This document shows positions 8,571 through 18,469 of a stretch of DNA of 64,000 nucleotides, piece after piece. The position numbers and the translations under genes are program-made. The notes below the pieces were generated by a model, which was not told where the DNA came from, did no database searches, and worked only from the letters and a program-made list of their open reading frames with translations. How positions within the stretch are numbered: position 1 is the stretch's first letter; the number at the start of each line of letters is the position of its first letter. The DNA comes from Mytilus edulis (taxonomy: Eukaryota), in contig NC_092346.1 in NCBI RefSeq assembly GCF_963676685.1, forward strand, positions 44,392,001-44,456,000, read 5' to 3'.

Positions 8571-11336
8571 TTGAAGTATAGATTCTAGGTGCTGACGTTA
8601 TTTGTCATCTAAAATACGTGTTATAGTGTTCATTCATTTGCCTTGTAAATTGTTACTCTTTCTGTTTAGTCTATTTTTGGTTGAATCCATTTAACAAGGC
8701 TCAGCACTTATACAGCCTGTTGTTGTGTTGTTGTGTATTGGTAAATTATTGTAGTCTTGTCATTTGTTTTTGCGATTATGCTTTGTCTATAAGCCTTTTT
8801 GCATTTCTTTGTTGACATATTTGATCGTTTTATAGTTATTGATATTATAACTAAATGTAGACTGCCTTTACCTTAATTTTGACATTTTTACCTATTATGT
8901 TTTTGTATTTTGTTCACACATTGTTGTCAATATAATAGGATTTTATGCACAGGGTTGAAGAAGTGATAGGTTTAGCTATCTATGCAACCAGGCTTAATCC
9001 AACCTTTTCTACATAAGAAAATTCCTGTATCAAATCAGGACGATTACAGTTGTTTTCCATTTGTTTGATATCTTTGACTGTTTGTCCATGTCATTTTACT
9101 AAGAGACTTTCCGATTCGACTTTTCCTTGGAGCTCAATATTTTTTATACTTACCTTTTTTTCACTTTATATTCGTTCAAATATGTTTGAACTTCTGATTT
9201 TGCCATTTGATTAGGGACCTTCCATTTTGAATTTTTCTCAGAGTTCATTATGGTTGGTATTTTACTTTTTTCTTATTTTGAATGTAAATAACTCGTCAAA
9301 AATTCTATGAATATAGTTTGTTTCGCCAGACGTGCGTTTCGTTTACATGAGGCATATCAGTGTCGCTCGAATCAATATTTGAAAACAAATACAAAGTTGA
9401 AGACCGTTAATAACCGCAAATTCCAAAATGCTGTGTCAAATACGGCTGAAGCAATCTATTCGTGGTGGGAGAAAGCCTGAGTATTTTAAATATTTCAACA
9501 TTTAACATTAAATTTACAGAAAATGACCACAACCATGGTAAACGAAGGACAACTCTAATGCAATTTACAAGAGCGCAATTTTTTTTTTACATTTTACAGG
9601 ATGGTACTCAGAATAGAAGCTTTTATACCTTCTGATTAGATGATATATGATTGAAATTACTTTTCATCGAAAGCTTTATCAATTAGGTTTTTAAAATACA
9701 GAGTCAATTTCATATTTTACCGAGTATAGAAAATATATTCAATTTAAGCTCGTCGGAACCAAGACAAATTTTCATTTATCATTAATCGAAAAAAAAAGGT
9801 CAACTTTTGCCTCTTGACCATATACATTTTTTGACTGTAATGACACGCTGACATGTCTACAAACAGGAACTGATACCCAATGTTTTCTAGTTTGTGTGAA
9901 GACTCCGGGAAAGATAAGATGGAATACCACTGATGCTCTATTGAAAATGCATTATGAATAAATGAACTCCTGTAGCACTGGAGCACTGGAGAACTCGCAA
10001 TGAATGGATATAAGATGCAGGTGATGTATATACTTTATGAATACATAGAAAGTGTTATTAACTACCTACTGTAAAATTGAGAAATGAAATGGGGAATGCG
10101 TCAAAGCGACAACAACCCGACCATAGAACAGACAACAGCCGAAGGCCACCAATGGGTCTTCAATATAGCGAGAAACCCCCTCACCCGGAGGCGTCCTTCA
10201 GCTGGCCCCTTAAAAAATATGTATAGTAGTTCAGTGATAATGGACGTGTATACGTTATATATGTTTATGACTTTGTATTGACAATACGATAATGTACATA
10301 TAGAACTTTGTATACGATAATTTATACATAGGTTTGTGTATACGATATGTATACATAAGTTTAATTCTGAACTATTAAAAGTCATATGAAACCTCAAATA
10401 AAAAAAAATGATGCATATGTTTTTTATGACTAAATGGATGGTTTTCATTATAAAATTTATGTACATATACTTTTTTAAGAAAATTCTTTAATTTGTCCAC
10501 ATTTAGAAGAAGTTTATTTCTTTTAATTGCTTGCTTCCAGGAAGCAATTCTCCGACATACATTCCGTATGCAAGTAATCTAAGCGTGACACCTCTCGTAA
10601 AATCCGGTGATCGCAATACGCATGGATCTGTCTTTAAATAAATTATTATCTGATTATACATGTTATACACGTGCTCAATATCCATGCATCTTTGTTGATT
10701 GTTTACTATAAGGTGACAATCGATAAACTACGGCTTCAAAACACAGCAATTAATGAGCAGCCATATTTGTTAGATCATAACAGACTGACTCTCAAAAACA
10801 AATGACGATTATACTATATTTTGGCGTAAGAAATGAAAAAATCGTGCACAGAAGACTTAAGTTTATGATATATACATGCATTGGTTAAAAAATTGGATAA
10901 ACTTTATTTTTCACCGGTCACTCGTTTCATTTGACTTTAACCCGAAATTGTCAATGATATTGTCAAAATACAAAATAGCCAGATATCAGTGTACATACTT
11001 CCCATGGTTTTTGCACACAAACTAATTTGGAATGCACTATAAAAAAAATTGAAACGTTTTCTTCAGTAGAAAATGCATATCATGATGTCGTTCATGTGGT
11101 TTTTTTTTATACTTGTAAATTGTTTTACAGAGGTTTTAATTGGTTTTGTATGCAGGTCTCATACTTGTAAAGATAATAATCAAACTCCCCTTCAGTTCCA
11201 GCTCCGATCCGCATACGGGTCCTCATACGATTCTACCCTAATCACATTGTTCGAGTAAAGGAAAATAGTTCCAGAACGGAAACGATCACTGTACGGAGTT
11301 TGGATATAATGTTACACATTTTATTAAAATTAGCAA

Positions 11337-14300
11337 CTAACATGAAAATGACCGGATTAGTCCTGGTTTAAAAAATGGAAGCATTTTTTTCCTGAAATTT
11401 TCATCATCATATTTCACAGGCTTTATTGCCCGAAACTCAGTTGGCAGTTTGTCATCTTTTGTCATTAATACCGGAATGACCCTACCACGTTTGTTTTCAT
11501 CTTCTAAAGACATGACGAGGCAGGTGTTGGCTATGTATTGAAATATTTTTGACTCGTGGTAGTATTGAGATAGTAGAACAAAAATATAATGTCTTGTGAA
11601 ATACGGGTTCACATCAAGCAGCATTTCCCCTGGTTTTGATACTTCATCTTGAAGTTCTATTTTCACCTCAGGTATTGTATTATTAAATTTTTTCAAAAAG
11701 GATCCAGCTTTGTGAGAGTCTTCTGGAAACTCAGAGTGGAGGACAACAGCAGTTCCGTAGCAAATTTCATGATCTTTAAATAAAAATAAAATATTAACTA
11801 ATACAATAGAAAATAATATATGTATGTCAAATTGCTGATGATTTACTAACACTCTCATACGTATATTAGAAAGAGAGTTCTTAAAATTATCGTTACTTGA
11901 TCTGGAGTTTAAGTTATGTATATTGATAGCATAAAGTGATTTAATTAGTAGCTTGAAACAGTAGTATACGATTGGGGTCTTTACTTTTTTTCGTACCTCA
12001 AATGTGTAATGATTAGTCATCACAATGCACTGACTTATTCGACCAACGAAAATATCAAACGTAATTTTTTCTATTATTTTTTTTTTAATTTCTTTTAACA
12101 CGAAGGTTATAAGTAATTAAATAAAAATAGAATTTAAACTAGTTTTTTCTGAATAAAGTTTTAAATGGGCAAAGATATATTTCATCTGGTAAACTCATAC
12201 CAGATTTGTCGTCTGTTAACTCCTTATTCAGCTCTTTGACGTCTAACCTCCAGTCTACACCCAGCTCGCTTAAGCTATCTTTTATTTTTGTTCTCTTTTT
12301 CCTTTTCCTAAATTCATGTTAAAGAAGTTACTTTATATTAATCATAATAAGATATAATGCAAAACTGTATACTAGTATATGATTTTATAGCATTAATTAT
12401 TTAAATATGCAAATTTTGAAATGATGTAGAGAAACTTTACCATTGAGAAAGCGTTAATTATCAAAGATTTTTTTTTAAAGCGTAAATGTAGTTTTATCAA
12501 GCAGATTAACTGTATTTGTGTTTAAATCAATCAAAGTTCTAACGTTCATTTTATTAAATAAATAAATGCCTTTTCGAAATTTATAGATGATGAAAAAACT
12601 TCATTACAGTGAAAAAGATCAATGATACAATAGATAAATGTAACTTGACTAAATGCACCATACCTGTTTCTCAACAATGAACAAACGAAGTCAAACAGTG
12701 TCCCTTCTTTGGATGGCAACCCTGATAATCTTCTAGCCATCAAGGTTACTTCTTTGATTACTTCACATGATTTTCGTTTAGAGTATCGTCTGTGTAGGTA
12801 CTGTTTCTTTGAGTTTTTCGGAACAGCAACAGCAATATTCCAGCTTGAAAATGATTCCTTGGAAGGAAGAGAATATTCTGCATGCCGTTCTGTTTTAGAA
12901 TATCTTTTTCTTTGTTTTTGGCGAAATGTTTTCTTTTGTTCTGATGCTGGTTTTTGTAAATCTACTTTATGGGTTTTAAACATATATTTCGGGTTATCCT
13001 GTCCTTCAGGTGTATGTGGTATTGCTAGTGAGTCTTGTATATGATCTTTGATCGAATTTTGAATCAGGTGTTCTTGGTCTTTGTTTATCGTTGATGACTG
13101 ACTCTGTGTCTGACTTTGACAGGCCCCAATCTCGTCGACTGAAAGCTTCTTAACTGTGTCGACCAACGGACTTCGGCTACGCGAGACGCTTTTATTTCCA
13201 GTTCCAACGCAAGAGGAACATGCCTGATCCAATTTACATTTTTCGTTTCCACTTCTGAGATGAACAACCAACTGATCAGGTTTATCGAGACTTCTTCTAT
13301 TGCAAAACCCAGTTTTCGTGGTCGCAAAAAGTGCTGAATGATCGAATGTTCCTATTTCACTTGGACATTTCCTGATACCTTGATCATTGCACACCTCTGA
13401 TTGCTCAAGGTGAAGTTTAGATCTAAAATTATAATCGTTGGATTTGTTATTTCGTACAAATGGATGTATGAAAACTATTTTGTAATTTTATGCAGAATAT
13501 ATAGTCGAAATGACGGTGATGCATAGTGAAAGCTAAACAATTGTTTGTATGCTTTATGAAATCTCTTCAGCAATAGGTCTTGTCAAAAAGAAATAACAGT
13601 ACTACTACAGTTTTTTAAACGTCCTTGTGTGACAATTAGCATCGTTTTAAAACCATTAAAAGATAAATATACAATACAATTAGGCTTTCAATATCGTATA
13701 ACATTATGTAAATGTTTTTGTGAACTGAGTGTTTTCTTCAACTCCATAATGTTTATACTTGTTTGATTAAGAATAATTTCCCTTGGTTTTAGGATGAGGC
13801 AGCTCTTAACATTTTCCTATGTTTCTTAATCTGATACGCGTATTGTACTTTCAACAATGAGCGAGTGCCATTACTTGTGATCTAAAAAAAGTATGTTCTT
13901 TGTTGTTAATTCTGGAAAACAAAATCTCACCTAAAAGGAAGAGGATGTTTAAAAGTCTTTAGTCTCTCACAACATTCTTTTTCATCAGTTTTTCTCGCTA
14001 CCTCTGTTTTGTCTAAAACAGGATCCCTTCTAGTCTATAAAAAATAAAAACCAGTAATAGAATAAGGAATTGGAAATCACCTGTTGTTTTGTTGATAATT
14101 CTACCTTTGATTGTGTATAGTTTCATGGACTTCAATCTTTTTGAATTTACTTTTCATGTGTATATACTCAGTTTTTTTTCATACTTATACACTTTGAACA
14201 CTTTATATTCGGAAAATAATAGGTATTTTAATGAAAAGATTGTGTCGCTGGGAGTTTTTCTCAATGTTGTTGAAAGAGTAAAAAAATATATAAAGGAACA

Positions 14301-17300
14301 CTTTATATTTTTATTAATCTTTTAAAGACTTGCAATGGTCATTTTCATCTTATTGCAATGCGGACTGGTGTTCTATGCACTTTTATAAGATTTCATTGGT
14401 TTGATGAAGAAATTTACCTTTATCCTTTAGGGAAGGCTGTTTGCGCTCGTGTACATTTGTCAATTTTATCCTCATTATTTAAAACAAGAAATAATTTGAC
14501 GTTATTATAAGTCATTCTCTCTGTATTCATATGTATAAAGTTTTTGTAATATGGCCACTGAAAATCGAAACGTTTCTAGTTGTTTTATTTAATTATTTCA
14601 ATTGTTACCAATATAACAACTGTACCACTGAATTAACCGTGAGAGAAAAAAATAGTACTTACTTTATCAGTGTGTTCTTCCACTACGTATTTAAGTGACT
14701 TAGAATTAGTACATGGTTTGTTACCTGAAATAAAATAAATCGTTAAATAAATAGTCATTATACAAGGTGAAGTATTTGTGTCTCAGCAAACTAAAATGGG
14801 AGTAAACTTAAATAATTTAAGAGTGTTTGGATTCACTTTTGCTTAAAACTTCTTTTATATAATTTGTGGGATTTGTTTATTTTGTTTATCTTCTTGGAAT
14901 TTTAAATCTTTATTTTATTTGCATTTTTAAAGCAGTTTCTCGAAAAGAATAGAAGTTGAAACTATAACAAGTCATTTGGGAAAATATGTGAAGCACTTTA
15001 AAACTTGGTTAACTCAGCTTCATTCTGTTGTTTTCTGACCAAACGCAAAAGCCTGTAATTCAGTTGTTGATAGTTTGTTTCATTTTGCATGTGTAAAATG
15101 CTCATTTGTTTTACACCTTTTTGACCGTCGCGTCATATGTCAATTTTATATCTGTTCTTATGTTCTCTGTTGTAAGGTTGGGGTTGAGCGTCACTGATAA
15201 GTCTTTTGTAGTCGAAACGCGCGTCTGGCGTAAATATAAACTTCCAATCCTGGTATCTATGATGAGTTTATTGATGGTGTTGCAAAACTGAAAATATATT
15301 AAAAAACATTATATTTACATTTCCCTTAAAATATATGCAAATTTATGAAACATACGAAAAAAACCATTAAAACGAACTGTCATAAATATATATAATCCTT
15401 CGTAGCAAATGATAGCATGCCCAGAAGGTACATCTTAGGTAAACGTAACATTTTTTTTGTATTAAGCATAAAGTTACATTTACCTCTTAGAAGCCTAACT
15501 GGACACTCTGTCAAGATATTACGAAAGAATAATGGAATTTAAAAATATTTACCTCGGGCATTTAAAAACCACTTTGTTTGCTCTGGAGGTTCCAATCTGT
15601 TCTTCGCCTGTAAATATACATGTTTAAATAGTTCAAGTTTAGGACAAGAAGTTTCATGGAAAGAAAAAATGATACTAGTATACTCTAGAATATATATGAT
15701 TATCATCTAACGTTCTCAAAATGCAAGTTGATACGACATTCCCGGGATAGCGTTTCCTATTATCTTCCCTTGAGACATGGTCACAGCTTGATAGAGGGTT
15801 GAAGCTCTTAAACTAAGTGTTCCGAGTGTTAAGGTTGAAAAAATCTCTTAAAAAATCAACGAACGCCATCACGAGTTGATTGACCGTTTAGTGTCACAGG
15901 TGATGACGAATATAATTCAATCGTCATAACCACTATCCCCTCCATCCTTTTCCCAGAAAGTGCTCTTCCAAATAAGACTTACCGACGTCTTTGTACTTAT
16001 AAGAACAACATGAGGCGTGCCACATGTGGATCAGGATTTCATTACCTTTCTCTTTCTGTAGCGCTTGATATCAACCTCGTGTTTTCGTTGGGACATACTT
16101 TGGTTTTCTATGTTGTGTTTTGTATAGCTTTATTTGTTGTTTGCTCTTTGTTCTATTGTTCTCTTTTAATTTGCCATGGTTTTGTCAAAAAAAATTTCGA
16201 CTGTTCTAGTTTGGATGTCATTTTGGCATTTTTGCTTCTTTTTTATATTTTTTTTTTTGTAATCAAAGATTTTTTACAAATTTAATAGCATACATTTATT
16301 ATTTTCTAATATCAAAGATTTTATTGTTTCAGTTTGTTGTGATCAATGACACTTACTGGAAATTTGAATTCCGTCAATGAATGTTTAACTGTTTCAATTT
16401 GCAAGTCAATCCTATCTGTAAAACAAAGTAATCTATTAGATAACTCAGATTTTGGGCATCATTCGGCTGAAACAAAGTATTCTAATGAACAGACACGTAA
16501 AAACAAAAACTATACGACTTTTGACAAAAAGATTTAATAATTTAACATAAGAAAAAAAGTTGCCATAGATACTTCATTCATTGTTAACAAACAAACCAAA
16601 GCTCGTCATGTAATGTTGCCATTTTGGCGGTATATTTAACATTGCCATGAAGCGCAAGGTTTGGCTAGCCACAAAACCAGGTTCAACCCAGTGTGTTTAT
16701 TTAAATGTCTTGTACCAACTTAGGAATATGGCAGTTGTTATATAATAGTTCGTTTTGGTGTATGTTGTATTTTCGGTTTTGTTTGGTTGCACTTCAGTGT
16801 TCTTTTGTTTCCTTGTTTTCCTGTTATAGTTGATGTTTTTCTCTCAATCGATTGGTGACTTTTGAACAACGATATACTACTGCTGTCTTTGTTTACATTG
16901 ACTTTTGCTATTGAATAATAGTACTTTCATTGGCGATCATACCAAATATTTTGATATTGTTACTTTCAGTAAAGAACTCTATGAGGCTTGTGGAAGTTAT
17001 ACAATGCTCTACTTTTGAGTTATCGTGTATATACACCAAAAAATGTCTTGTTTAAAGAATATTACCTTCTTTGGAACGTGTGTTAACTTCGTATATAATT
17101 TGGAATTTCTGCTCCAAAAACTTCGGTTTCTTTAGGTATTCCTCCAAAGCATTTGCTATGTTACAGCACTGGTCAAAATAGATCTCAAACTGTGATTCTG
17201 TTATATTTGTATTTGTTAAATGACATAACTCGTTTCTAATTCTCATCAGCGTTGTTATAAGTATTTCAACATTGTTTTTCTCGTGAATATGTCGAAGAAG

Positions 17301-17567
17301 TACCGCTATGGTTGTTATGTCGAAAGGTCTGTATCCCGTTCTTGAAGCATTGCATATGAGTTCTTCTTCTCTTTGTGTAAATCGTTTCTTTAACTTGTTT
17401 TTAACTGCATTATAGTAGTCTTCTATTTTAGAATTGGCAATAGAATGATGTAAAAGTTCCCTGAGCAGCTCAGTCAAATCATCAAATATAATTTTGTTCA
17501 AAATAGATAAATACTTATTACACTCCAGTAGTATATAGTCCTCTGAAGACGTTATAGGAAACGGCAT
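11337..17567 (-). CDS. HEPN (DZIP3/hRUL138-like) - low-complexity linker - TICAM/TRIF-like TIR domain protein, about 656 aa, 6 coding exons
   Basis: Exons 17567-17066, 14724-14663, 14034-13931, 13422-12664, 12307-12201 and 11773-11337 are all GT-AG, phase-compatible and free of internal stops (1971 nt). Exon 1 has FDITTIAVLLR...RIRNELCH (DZIP3-HEPN signature plus Rx4H). The last exon has AVVLHSE..EDSHKA...KPGEMLL...IFVLLSQYY...NTCLVMSLE...RVIPVL, matching the TICAM-type TIR pattern. The ATG was chosen because an in-frame TAG lies just upstream, after the acceptor at 17623. Confidence 0.8.
15186..15232 (+). ncRNA. Degenerate hammerhead copy in intron 1 of the HEPN-TIR gene (antisense)
   Basis: GAGCGTCA-CTGATAA-GTCTTTTGTAGTC-GAAAC-GCGCGTC-TGGCGTA, with a G8A change and a damaged stem II. 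Further decayed copies lie at about 9324-9368(-), 20671-20716(+), 26860-26905(-), 27765-27810(+) and 54102-54125(-, truncated). Confidence 0.6.
15700..16060 (+). pseudogene. Highly decayed 3' fragment of a Penelope-like element, intronic
   Basis: aaatctcttaaaaaatcaacgaacgccatcacgagttgattgaccgt resembles the KSLxKFYGRHHxLVDRY thumb end typical of this element family. Confidence 0.45.
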
Positions 17568-18469
17568 TTTCACATTTTCAGGATTCCTTAAGAAATCCAC
17601 CAAATTCTAGAAAATATAACTACCTGAAATAAACGATGGCAAATTTTATAAACTGTGCCCAATGTAGATGGTGTTAGGTCAAACAAATTTAGCTGGAATA
17701 ATAAAACAATTGTAATTAACATGCATGATGTTTTTTTTTCACTTCTTTTTGCAACAATACTTTGTCCTTAACTTGTCTGCACTGCATTTAAAACGCTTGT
17801 CTAAAAATGTCATCAAAAACAATACGGTAAAACATTTGAAAAACAAGGAGCAGAAAAAGAAAACAGTTAAAATCTCTTGGGTTAAATTGCCGAAGTTTAT
17901 AACTGTTTCAACGTTTAAAGATGCTTTAAAGTTTCTTATCATGCATACATTGCGTGCCTTGAATAATTGGTACATCGTTGTTTTGCCTACCAATTGTTTT
18001 GACTTTAGTGCCACTCACTTATGAATAAGAAACGCGCCTCTGACAAACAAACATATTATTCCTGGTATCTAGGATAACATTTGTTTTCAATACTGGATCT
18101 TCCTGTCGGTAATATGCTATTAGACTAGCGTTTGTTTTCGTCAGCTTTTATATGGACTTCCCGCTTTTTCAATTAACAAGTTAAGATTTCAGTAGTGTTG
18201 TAAGAATATTTTTTTTCAATACCATTTCTGGTTAAACTTTCAGCTTTGAATGTATCACTACCGCAGTATTAAAGCAAAAATCTCCAGGGTTTGTTCATTT
18301 CTGTTAACTTACTGCTCACCGAATACTTAATTTATTCAAAAAGATACGGGTTTTTTTTCTACCCCAGGAATAGATTGACTACCTAGCCAGATTTGTCGCA
18401 TTCGTTTTGCGATTTCTTGTTTTTGAAGATCTTCAGTTTCGTATTGATTTTGATTTCAAACACTTTGAA

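Follow-up and report, generated by a model that had tools for sequence, protein, structure and literature searches.

The ribonucleases (RNases) RNase L and Ire1 contain HEPN domains of the KEN family, in which a composite active site is formed between two protomers, and they are activated by ligand-driven dimerisation or oligomerisation of another domain. In bivalves, DZIP3-type HEPN domains fill effector slots beside CARD, Death, NACHT, DED and TRADD-N domains in expanded immune gene families (PMC3710099, PMC8195603, PMC9646362), and a bacterial fusion of HEPN and TIR domains has been listed (PMC3710099). TRIF-like TIR domains have been described as occurring only in chordates (PMC7075850, PMC9334734). 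An expressed gene that joins a DZIP3-type HEPN domain to a C-terminal TIR domain was identified on the minus strand of a 64,000-nucleotide stretch of Mytilus edulis DNA (assembly GCF_963676685.1, contig NC_092346.1, positions 44,392,001 to 44,456,000), which is referred to here, at its full length, as the window. The gene extends from 17567 to 11337 of the window and contains eight coding exons that encode a protein of 694 amino acids, with the frame open throughout. This gene and domain anatomy is regarded as nearly certain; what the protein does is weighed separately below.

Three minus-strand open reading frames are present in this part of the window (17052-17603, 12546-13394 and 11337-12101). 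An inspection of the letters alone, called the sequence-only reading here, had joined them through three small exons into one coding sequence of 656 amino acids, and this six-exon join is open in silico with GT-AG at all junctions. Four public RNA runs were compared with positions 11500-17499 of the window (6000 letters), three as assembled contigs (runs X1, X3 and X2) and one as raw reads (X21). The three contig runs come from three different studies under two organism labels, and their contigs hold the exonic part of the stretch only. A contig of 2430 nucleotides from run X1 begins at 17484, continues past 11500, and carries all seven joints together with the HEPN exon and the TIR exon. The joints 17066->16415, 16357->15607, 15553->14724, 14663->14034, 13931->13422 and 12201->11773 were found in X1, X3 and X2, and the joint 12664->12307 was found in X1 and X3 and is missing from X2. 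The joints that skip introns have CT..AC ends on the plus strand, that is, GT..AG on the gene strand. Because one contig spans all junctions, the HEPN exon and the TIR exon are parts of one mRNA, and the view that they belong to one gene rather than two is borne out, the joints being common to three runs. The sampled-word share held by 14 contig runs from eight studies was 0.25-0.34, and the exonic share of the stretch is about 0.31.

The transcripts thus uphold the open reading frames, the single gene, the open frame and the one spliced product of the sequence-only reading, but they correct its length, since two exons had been overlooked (coding exons 2 and 3 in Table 1; 114 nucleotides together, or 38 codons, which keep the frame). 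The junction 17066->14724 proposed in their place is absent from the transcripts, and the eight-exon model is preferred. Translation of the eight exons is identical over all 694 residues to P0025, a RefSeq-derived "uncharacterized protein [Mytilus edulis]" that was returned by a search with a full-length paralog and on which PF18738 is a precomputed match. The start methionine is common to all eight close full-length homologues, which supports the ATG at 17567 as the start codon. RNA contig coverage of the coding sequence begins at 17484. The contigs of the three independent runs end at 17484-17488, 80 nucleotides inside the coding sequence and at a place without a splice acceptor; these ends are probably a common variant or a branch of the assembly graph.

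Seven exonic differences separate the RNA contigs from the window. The three in the HEPN and TIR domains are all synonymous, and the four in the linker, all located in exon 6, are all non-synonymous. The gene region contains no N runs. Each end exon has a single copy of 100% identity in the genome and no second near-identical copy, so no processed retrocopy was found to explain the intron-less contigs. In run X2, a contig (12533-13422) continues from exon 6 without a break into intron 6, 12533-12663 being intronic, and the Mytilus galloprovincialis gene model P0027 ends in the equivalent read-through of intron 6. Either unspliced RNA or an isoform without the TIR domain, made up of HEPN and linker, may account for this.

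The HEPN domain is encoded by exon 1, which scores 33.8 bits (E 3.5e-8) on the Pfam family HEPN_DZIP3 (PF18738), whose cut-off is 27, over profile positions 4-114 of 144. It is a divergent member of this family in the genome, where the 150 matches listed score 68-112 bits. The catalytic-type motif RNELCH (Rx4H), which the sequence-only reading had placed near the N-terminus, occupies residues 111-116 and is conserved. In the form RN[EK]xxH it is kept in 8/8 full-length homologues, drawn from five Mytilus species, and in five exons of paralogs in the genome (L011-L015), whose identities are 35-64%. The HEPN domain is also the best conserved region of the protein, with 61-84% identity to homologues (48-55% for the TIR domain where complete, and 29-46% for the linker). 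The full-length AF2 model is all-helical over residues 8-184, and the nearest solved folds are HEPN domains, namely those of Csm6 (Z 9.6), AbiF (8.0), sacsin (7.1) and Swt1 (6.9), Z values that are not decisive for helical bundles. The N-terminal domain is apparently a HEPN domain of the DZIP3/hRUL138 type with an intact R-N-x3-H motif, and its RNase activity is putative.

Residues 1-170 were modelled as a homodimer with an ipSAE score of 0.72, against 0.00 for the best control; at least 75% of the contacts were common between runs, and the predicted local distance difference test (pLDDT) score was at least 84. In the calibration supplied with the tool, 21 of 30 proteins solved as pairs of one chain scored that high, and none of the 23 solved as single chains did. 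Residues 115-121, including His116, lie in the modelled interface, a predicted placement that a composite HEPN site would require.

The identity of the TIR domain was settled only by the family profile and the fold, and searches with its exon alone stayed below threshold. Exon 8 scored 16 bits on Pfam TIR_2 against a cut-off of 28 (E 0.018), and a single-sequence phmmer search of the exon against the Protein Data Bank (PDB) gave 0 matches; the Pfam TIR scores of the paralogs are 16.6-26.6 bits. A profile (A1) of twelve sequences, drawn from eight paralogous genome exons and nine protein-search clusters, matched solved TIR domains in the PDB: TRAM (TICAM2) with E 1.8e-10 and 44.5 bits, TRIF (TICAM1) with E 2.2e-7 and 34.5 bits, MyD88 with E 6.6e-4 and 23 bits, and Mal with E about 0.02 and about 18 bits. 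The margin over MyD88, in a comparison of solved structures only, is about 20 bits for TRAM and about 10 bits for TRIF. Of the profile checks proposed on the sequence alone, then, the one for HEPN_DZIP3 passes on a single exon, and the one for TIR_2 fails on its exon and is replaced by the family-level match.

The AF2 model of the TIR exon (pLDDT 84, predicted TM-score 0.81) shows alternating strands and helices. Foldseek returned 29 matches with E <= 0.001, and all those listed are TIR domains; TRAM (9dki and 9dlg, TMq 0.79) and TRIF (9dk8, 0.76) rank at the top, and SARM1 and bacterial TIR domains stand low in the list. VIA, an aligner independent of Foldseek, gave Z values of 11.6 for TRIF, 10.5 for TRAM and 10.3 for MyD88. 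A structure search of the ESM Atlas ranked TICAM1-like clusters first at TM values of only 0.21-0.27, and the feature search of the same resource gave no usable match.

The Pro-Gly pair of the BB loop is nearly invariant across the family and is kept in this protein as P597 and G598. The helix aligned with alpha-C of TRAM (SKIFQYIANTCL) contains no acidic residue, as the sequence-only reading had held, and the family shows no conserved Glu in that column. In NADase-type TIR domains such as those of SARM1 and plants, the catalytic Glu lies in the alpha-C region, and an NADase role is therefore unlikely. By profile and modelled fold, the last exon is a predicted scaffold-type TIR domain, most like the TIR domains of TICAM proteins among solved structures. 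The sequence-only description of the domain as TRIF/TICAM-like is apt for these closest solved relatives and does not extend to the rest of the protein. No Pfam match to TRIF-NTD (PF17798) or RHIM (PF12721) was obtained, a motif scan of P0025 found no match to L.IS (pLxIS), P.E..[FWYDE] (TRAF6) or [IV]Q[IVL]G (RHIM), and the Gly2 of TRAM-type N-myristoylation is absent, the protein starting with M-P-F-P and the TIR domain following some 555 residues later. The protein as a whole was rejected as a TICAM homologue on these features. Its TIR domain may be a distant relative of the TICAM TIRs or a case of convergence, the likeness resting on solved structures.

Between the two folded domains lies a linker of about 390 residues (167-555) with a pLDDT below 50 in the full-length AF2 model and no confident fold in it. 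The linker is rich in Lys and Ser, has an isoelectric point (pI) of 9.5, is the least conserved part of the protein, and is fast-evolving and probably disordered. A polybasic stretch, RNRKRKKRTKIK (residues 512-523), precedes the TIR domain; it may serve in nuclear targeting or in the binding of lipid or RNA. A coiled-coil-like segment of about 50 residues after exon 2 (columns ~212-262 of alignment A2) is missing from this copy; it is present in both paralog groups and in the Mytilus californianus and M. galloprovincialis homologues. No remnant of this segment was found by tblastn in intron 2 (15608-16356), and the ancestral exon 2 seems to have run past the present donor site.

Full-length collinear proteins form two groups and occur in M. 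edulis, M. trossulus, M. coruscus, M. galloprovincialis and M. californianus. In at least three loci of the genome, a TIR exon is preceded on its own strand, within a few kb, by a HEPN exon (Table 1). In the second of these, two tandem HEPN exons, each 64% identical to that of the window, lie upstream of one TIR exon, and they are either a duplicated first exon or two genes. Eight paralogs of the TIR exon were found in the genome, and Mytilus also contains a small family of TIR-only paralogs of 124-385 residues. One copy of the TIR exon (L003, G000:C6:46952240-46952608) carries two in-frame stops (TGA and TAA) and is probably a pseudogenised paralog. An exhaustive phmmer search of the TIR exon against 1.84 billion representatives gave 9 clusters, of which every named one is from Mytilus, and it gave no links to other phyla. 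Searches with the A2 and A1 profiles likewise returned named matches from Mytilus only; these searches are word-indexed and length-limited, so blanks elsewhere mean little. The HEPN_DZIP3 family gave at least 150 scored matches in the genome, all above the cut-off, from 651 first-look candidates; many of them are clustered, examples being C3 4.6-7.0 Mb, C6 5.8-6.3 Mb and C14 43.2-43.4 Mb. Such numbers amount to a lineage-specific expansion on a very large scale, in agreement with the sequence-only reading and with published reports of DZIP3-type HEPN expansion in bivalves (PMC3710099, PMC9646362).

Table 1. Coordinates of the HEPN-TIR gene in the window and of related loci in the genome
Feature	Position	Strand	Remarks
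Coding exon 1	17066..17567	-	Residues 1-167 plus 1 nucleotide; ATG at 17567; entire HEPN_DZIP3; donor 17066 joined to 16415 in three runs
HEPN Rx4H motif R-N-E-L-C-H	17220..17237	-	Codons 111-116; read from the sequence
Coding exon 2	16357..16415	-	59 nucleotides; joints in X1, X3, X2; frame open
Coding exon 3	15553..15607	-	55 nucleotides; joints in X1, X3, X2; frame open
Coding exon 4	14663..14724	-	62 nucleotides; RNA joints, phase checked
Coding exon 5	13931..14034	-	104 nucleotides; joints in three runs
Coding exon 6	12664..13422	-	759 nucleotides; most of the K/S-rich linker and start of the polybasic stretch (12664-12671); RNA joints
Coding exon 7	12201..12307	-	107 nucleotides; rest of the polybasic stretch RNRKRKKRTKIK (residues 512-523; 12280-12307) and conserved helix preceding the TIR domain
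Coding exon 8	11337..11773	-	Stop codon 11339-11337; TIR domain at residues ~556-685, about 11367-11756
Probable 3' untranslated region	10909..11336	-	Extent inferred from 591 of the 2430 nucleotides of the X1 contig beyond 11500, assuming no further intron
HEPN-TIR locus 1	17567-11337		The gene of the window
HEPN-TIR locus 2	G000:C3:44063810-44064307 (L011), 44067177-44067668 (L012), 44072456-44072827 (L002)		About 330 kb away on the same chromosome
HEPN-TIR locus 3			On another chromosome

The introns contain short repeats at 15186-15272 (intron 3) and also at 15700-15900, 16100-16300 and 16500-16900, all with very high RNA depth. Over these repeats, word depth in contigs reaches 10^4-10^5 and raw RNA reads match both strands; numerous loose ends occur at 15184-15186 and 15232. 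The repeats are probably an abundant transcribed mobile element. A guess that they represent a hammerhead or retrozyme element was dropped as unsupported, a search of Rfam with positions 10800-18200 having given no match.

The preferred reading of the gene is that its product is an RNase effector recruited through its TIR domain. The protein, which is presumably cytosolic, would be a bipartite TIR adaptor like MyD88 (Death-TIR) in which the output domain has been replaced by an RNase-type module. Its TIR domain, with the Pro-Gly of the BB loop, would join assemblies nucleated by activated Toll-like receptors (TLRs) or by other TIR proteins, the link to TLRs being presumed. Assembly of the TIR domains would concentrate the HEPN dimers or re-orient them into higher-order arrays, and such arrays would switch on or localise RNA cleavage. 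The logic would be that of the KEN domains of RNase L and Ire1 and of the N-terminal HEPN effector slot in bivalve proteins resembling nucleotide-binding leucine-rich repeat receptors (NLR-like proteins). With no pLxIS, TRAF6 or RHIM motif in the protein, the HEPN domain is left as the only candidate output. The sequence-only reading had proposed that TIR clustering dimerises the HEPN domain and thereby activates it, a view slightly weakened by the homodimer model. Since the HEPN domain is predicted to pair even in isolation, higher-order clustering or relocation is a likelier switch than dimerisation itself.

Several points weigh against the effector reading. Raw RNA run X21, of which about 6% was read, placed no reads on the exons. 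Dimerisation as such is unlikely to be the switch, since the isolated HEPN domain models as a dimer and the paralogs have a predicted coiled coil beside it. The dimer score itself may owe something to solved HEPN dimers remembered by the model. The polybasic stretch resembles a nuclear localisation signal, which would be out of place in a membrane-proximal TLR adaptor. The mechanism by itself is given somewhat less than an even chance, and the explanation that blends anatomy and mechanism stands about evenly balanced. A far-reaching form of it, in which an active HEPN RNase is built into an animal TIR adaptor and fired directly by TLR/TIR assemblies without a kinase or transcription cascade, and in which the TIR domain belongs to a TRAM/TRIF lineage dating to the bilaterian ancestor, is considered improbable.

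The alternative that survives best reverses the flow of the signal. A catalytically quiet HEPN domain would sense or bind RNA and gather the protein, and the TIR domains would then nucleate a signalosome through MyD88-like adaptors, making the protein an RNA-sensing adaptor. Animal HEPN proteins have been proposed as RNA sensors as well as RNases (PMC8662601), TIR domains of the TRAM/TRIF type are filament-forming nucleators whose closest solved structures here are filaments, and the basic linker (pI 9.5) could bind RNA. However, all paralogs strictly retain the catalytic-type RN..H motif, which a pure binder could do without, the TIR domain faces the receptor in known TIR adaptors, and the HEPN domain stands in the effector slot of bivalve NLR-like proteins (PMC9646362). 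An RNA-sensing adaptor is judged unlikely.

The protein might also be a regulator or decoy, with a TIR domain that competes for TIR-TIR interfaces and damps TLR signalling and with a HEPN domain that serves only as a dimerising scaffold. The TIR-only paralogs in Mytilus, the absence of downstream signalling motifs and the modelling of the HEPN domain as a stable dimer would all suit such a role. Against it stand the position of the HEPN domain as the most conserved part of the protein and its intact Rx4H motif, since R, N and H would be dispensable for dimerisation alone; a decoy function appears rather doubtful. An enzymatic TIR domain, hydrolysing or cyclising NAD+ like those of SARM1, plants or bacteria and acting with the HEPN domain as in bacterial defence, is very improbable. 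In prokaryotic defence, nucleases are commonly paired with TIR NADases, and SARM1 and bacterial TIRs do occur at low rank among the structural matches; the helix SKIFQYIANTCL, however, holds no Glu or Asp, its column is not Glu-conserved in the family, and the best matches are scaffold TIRs. The possibility that the HEPN and TIR exons come from separate genes, or that the locus is a pseudogene or retrocopy, is close to negligible: the read-through of intron 6 in X2 and P0027 would allow for a TIR-less isoform, but one contig spans all eight exons and could mislead only if contigs were chimeric in three independent runs, the open frame equals an independent RefSeq model, collinear full-length paralogs occur in five Mytilus species, and the end exons have no retrocopy.

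In the literature on HEPN and TIR domains in bivalves or Mytilus, no paper was found that describes this domain pairing in an animal. The remark in the sequence-only reading that it knew of no characterisation of the architecture is accurate in this respect, with the qualification that the gene was already predicted in RefSeq, where it is unnamed. The gene thus adds a new pairing to a familiar pattern, the fusion of bivalve HEPN domains to immune adaptor domains. For a bivalve such an architecture is no great surprise, yet it makes a compact and testable case for the function of animal DZIP3-type HEPN domains. Bivalves carry hundreds of DZIP3-type HEPN genes, and to our knowledge nobody has demonstrated their role. 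The mussel gene is tractable: the protein has two domains that fold, the catalytic-type motif is intact, the dimer model is confident, and R111 and H116 are clear sites for point mutants. It could reveal whether DZIP3-type HEPN domains are RNases and whether immune adaptor domains control them.

An active TIR-coupled RNase would be a eukaryotic counterpart of the adaptor-plus-nuclease logic of bacterial defence. If the HEPN domain proved inactive, the result would still inform the reading of molluscan HEPN-NLR and HEPN-death-fold genes. The gene also documents an invertebrate TIR domain that is nearest to TRAM and TRIF among solved structures, which bears on the view that the MyD88-independent adaptor branch is restricted to chordates. 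If this TIR domain belongs to the TRAM/TRIF lineage, a lineage so far called chordate-only would be pushed back to the bilaterian ancestor.

Among known systems, the bivalve DZIP3/hRUL138-like HEPN proteins (NLR-like proteins of the HEPN-NACHT type and HEPN-Ig-DED-TRADD-N proteins) share with the mussel gene an N-terminal PF18738 domain, the R-N-x3-H motif and a fused immune adaptor or oligomerisation module. They differ in the partner, which is a TIR domain here, and TIR is not among their reported partners. Prokaryotic defence proteins, such as Csm6 (CARF-HEPN), Cat1 (CARF-TIR) and DUF4145-HEPN proteins fused to TIR domains, bring the two superfamilies together or employ them as the same kinds of effector, and the HEPN domain of Csm6 is the best structural match of the mussel N-domain. 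These proteins contain other HEPN and TIR families, however, the TIR domain is usually the enzyme, and homology with the mussel gene is seen only at the level of the superfamily.

TRAM and TRIF contain the closest solved TIR domains by profile and fold, with which the mussel domain shares the BB-loop Pro-Gly and the lack of a catalytic Glu. TRIF is also similar in layout, having a helical N-domain and a long disordered linker followed by the TIR domain. The N-domain of the mussel protein is nevertheless a HEPN domain, and TRIF-NTD, RHIM, pLxIS, the TRAF6 motif and the N-myristoylation site are all lacking. RNase L and Ire1 resemble the mussel protein as carriers of HEPN-superfamily RNase modules, and their oligomerisation logic is the one proposed here by analogy. 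Their domains belong to the KEN family and are driven by pseudokinase or ankyrin modules rather than by TIR, and their activity is proven, whereas that of the mussel protein is putative. MyD88, the next-best solved TIR match, is likewise a bipartite adaptor, coupled to receptors through its TIR domain and producing its output through a second one. The order of the domains is reversed between the two proteins, and where the Death domain of MyD88 recruits kinases, its counterpart in the mussel protein is an enzyme-type HEPN domain.

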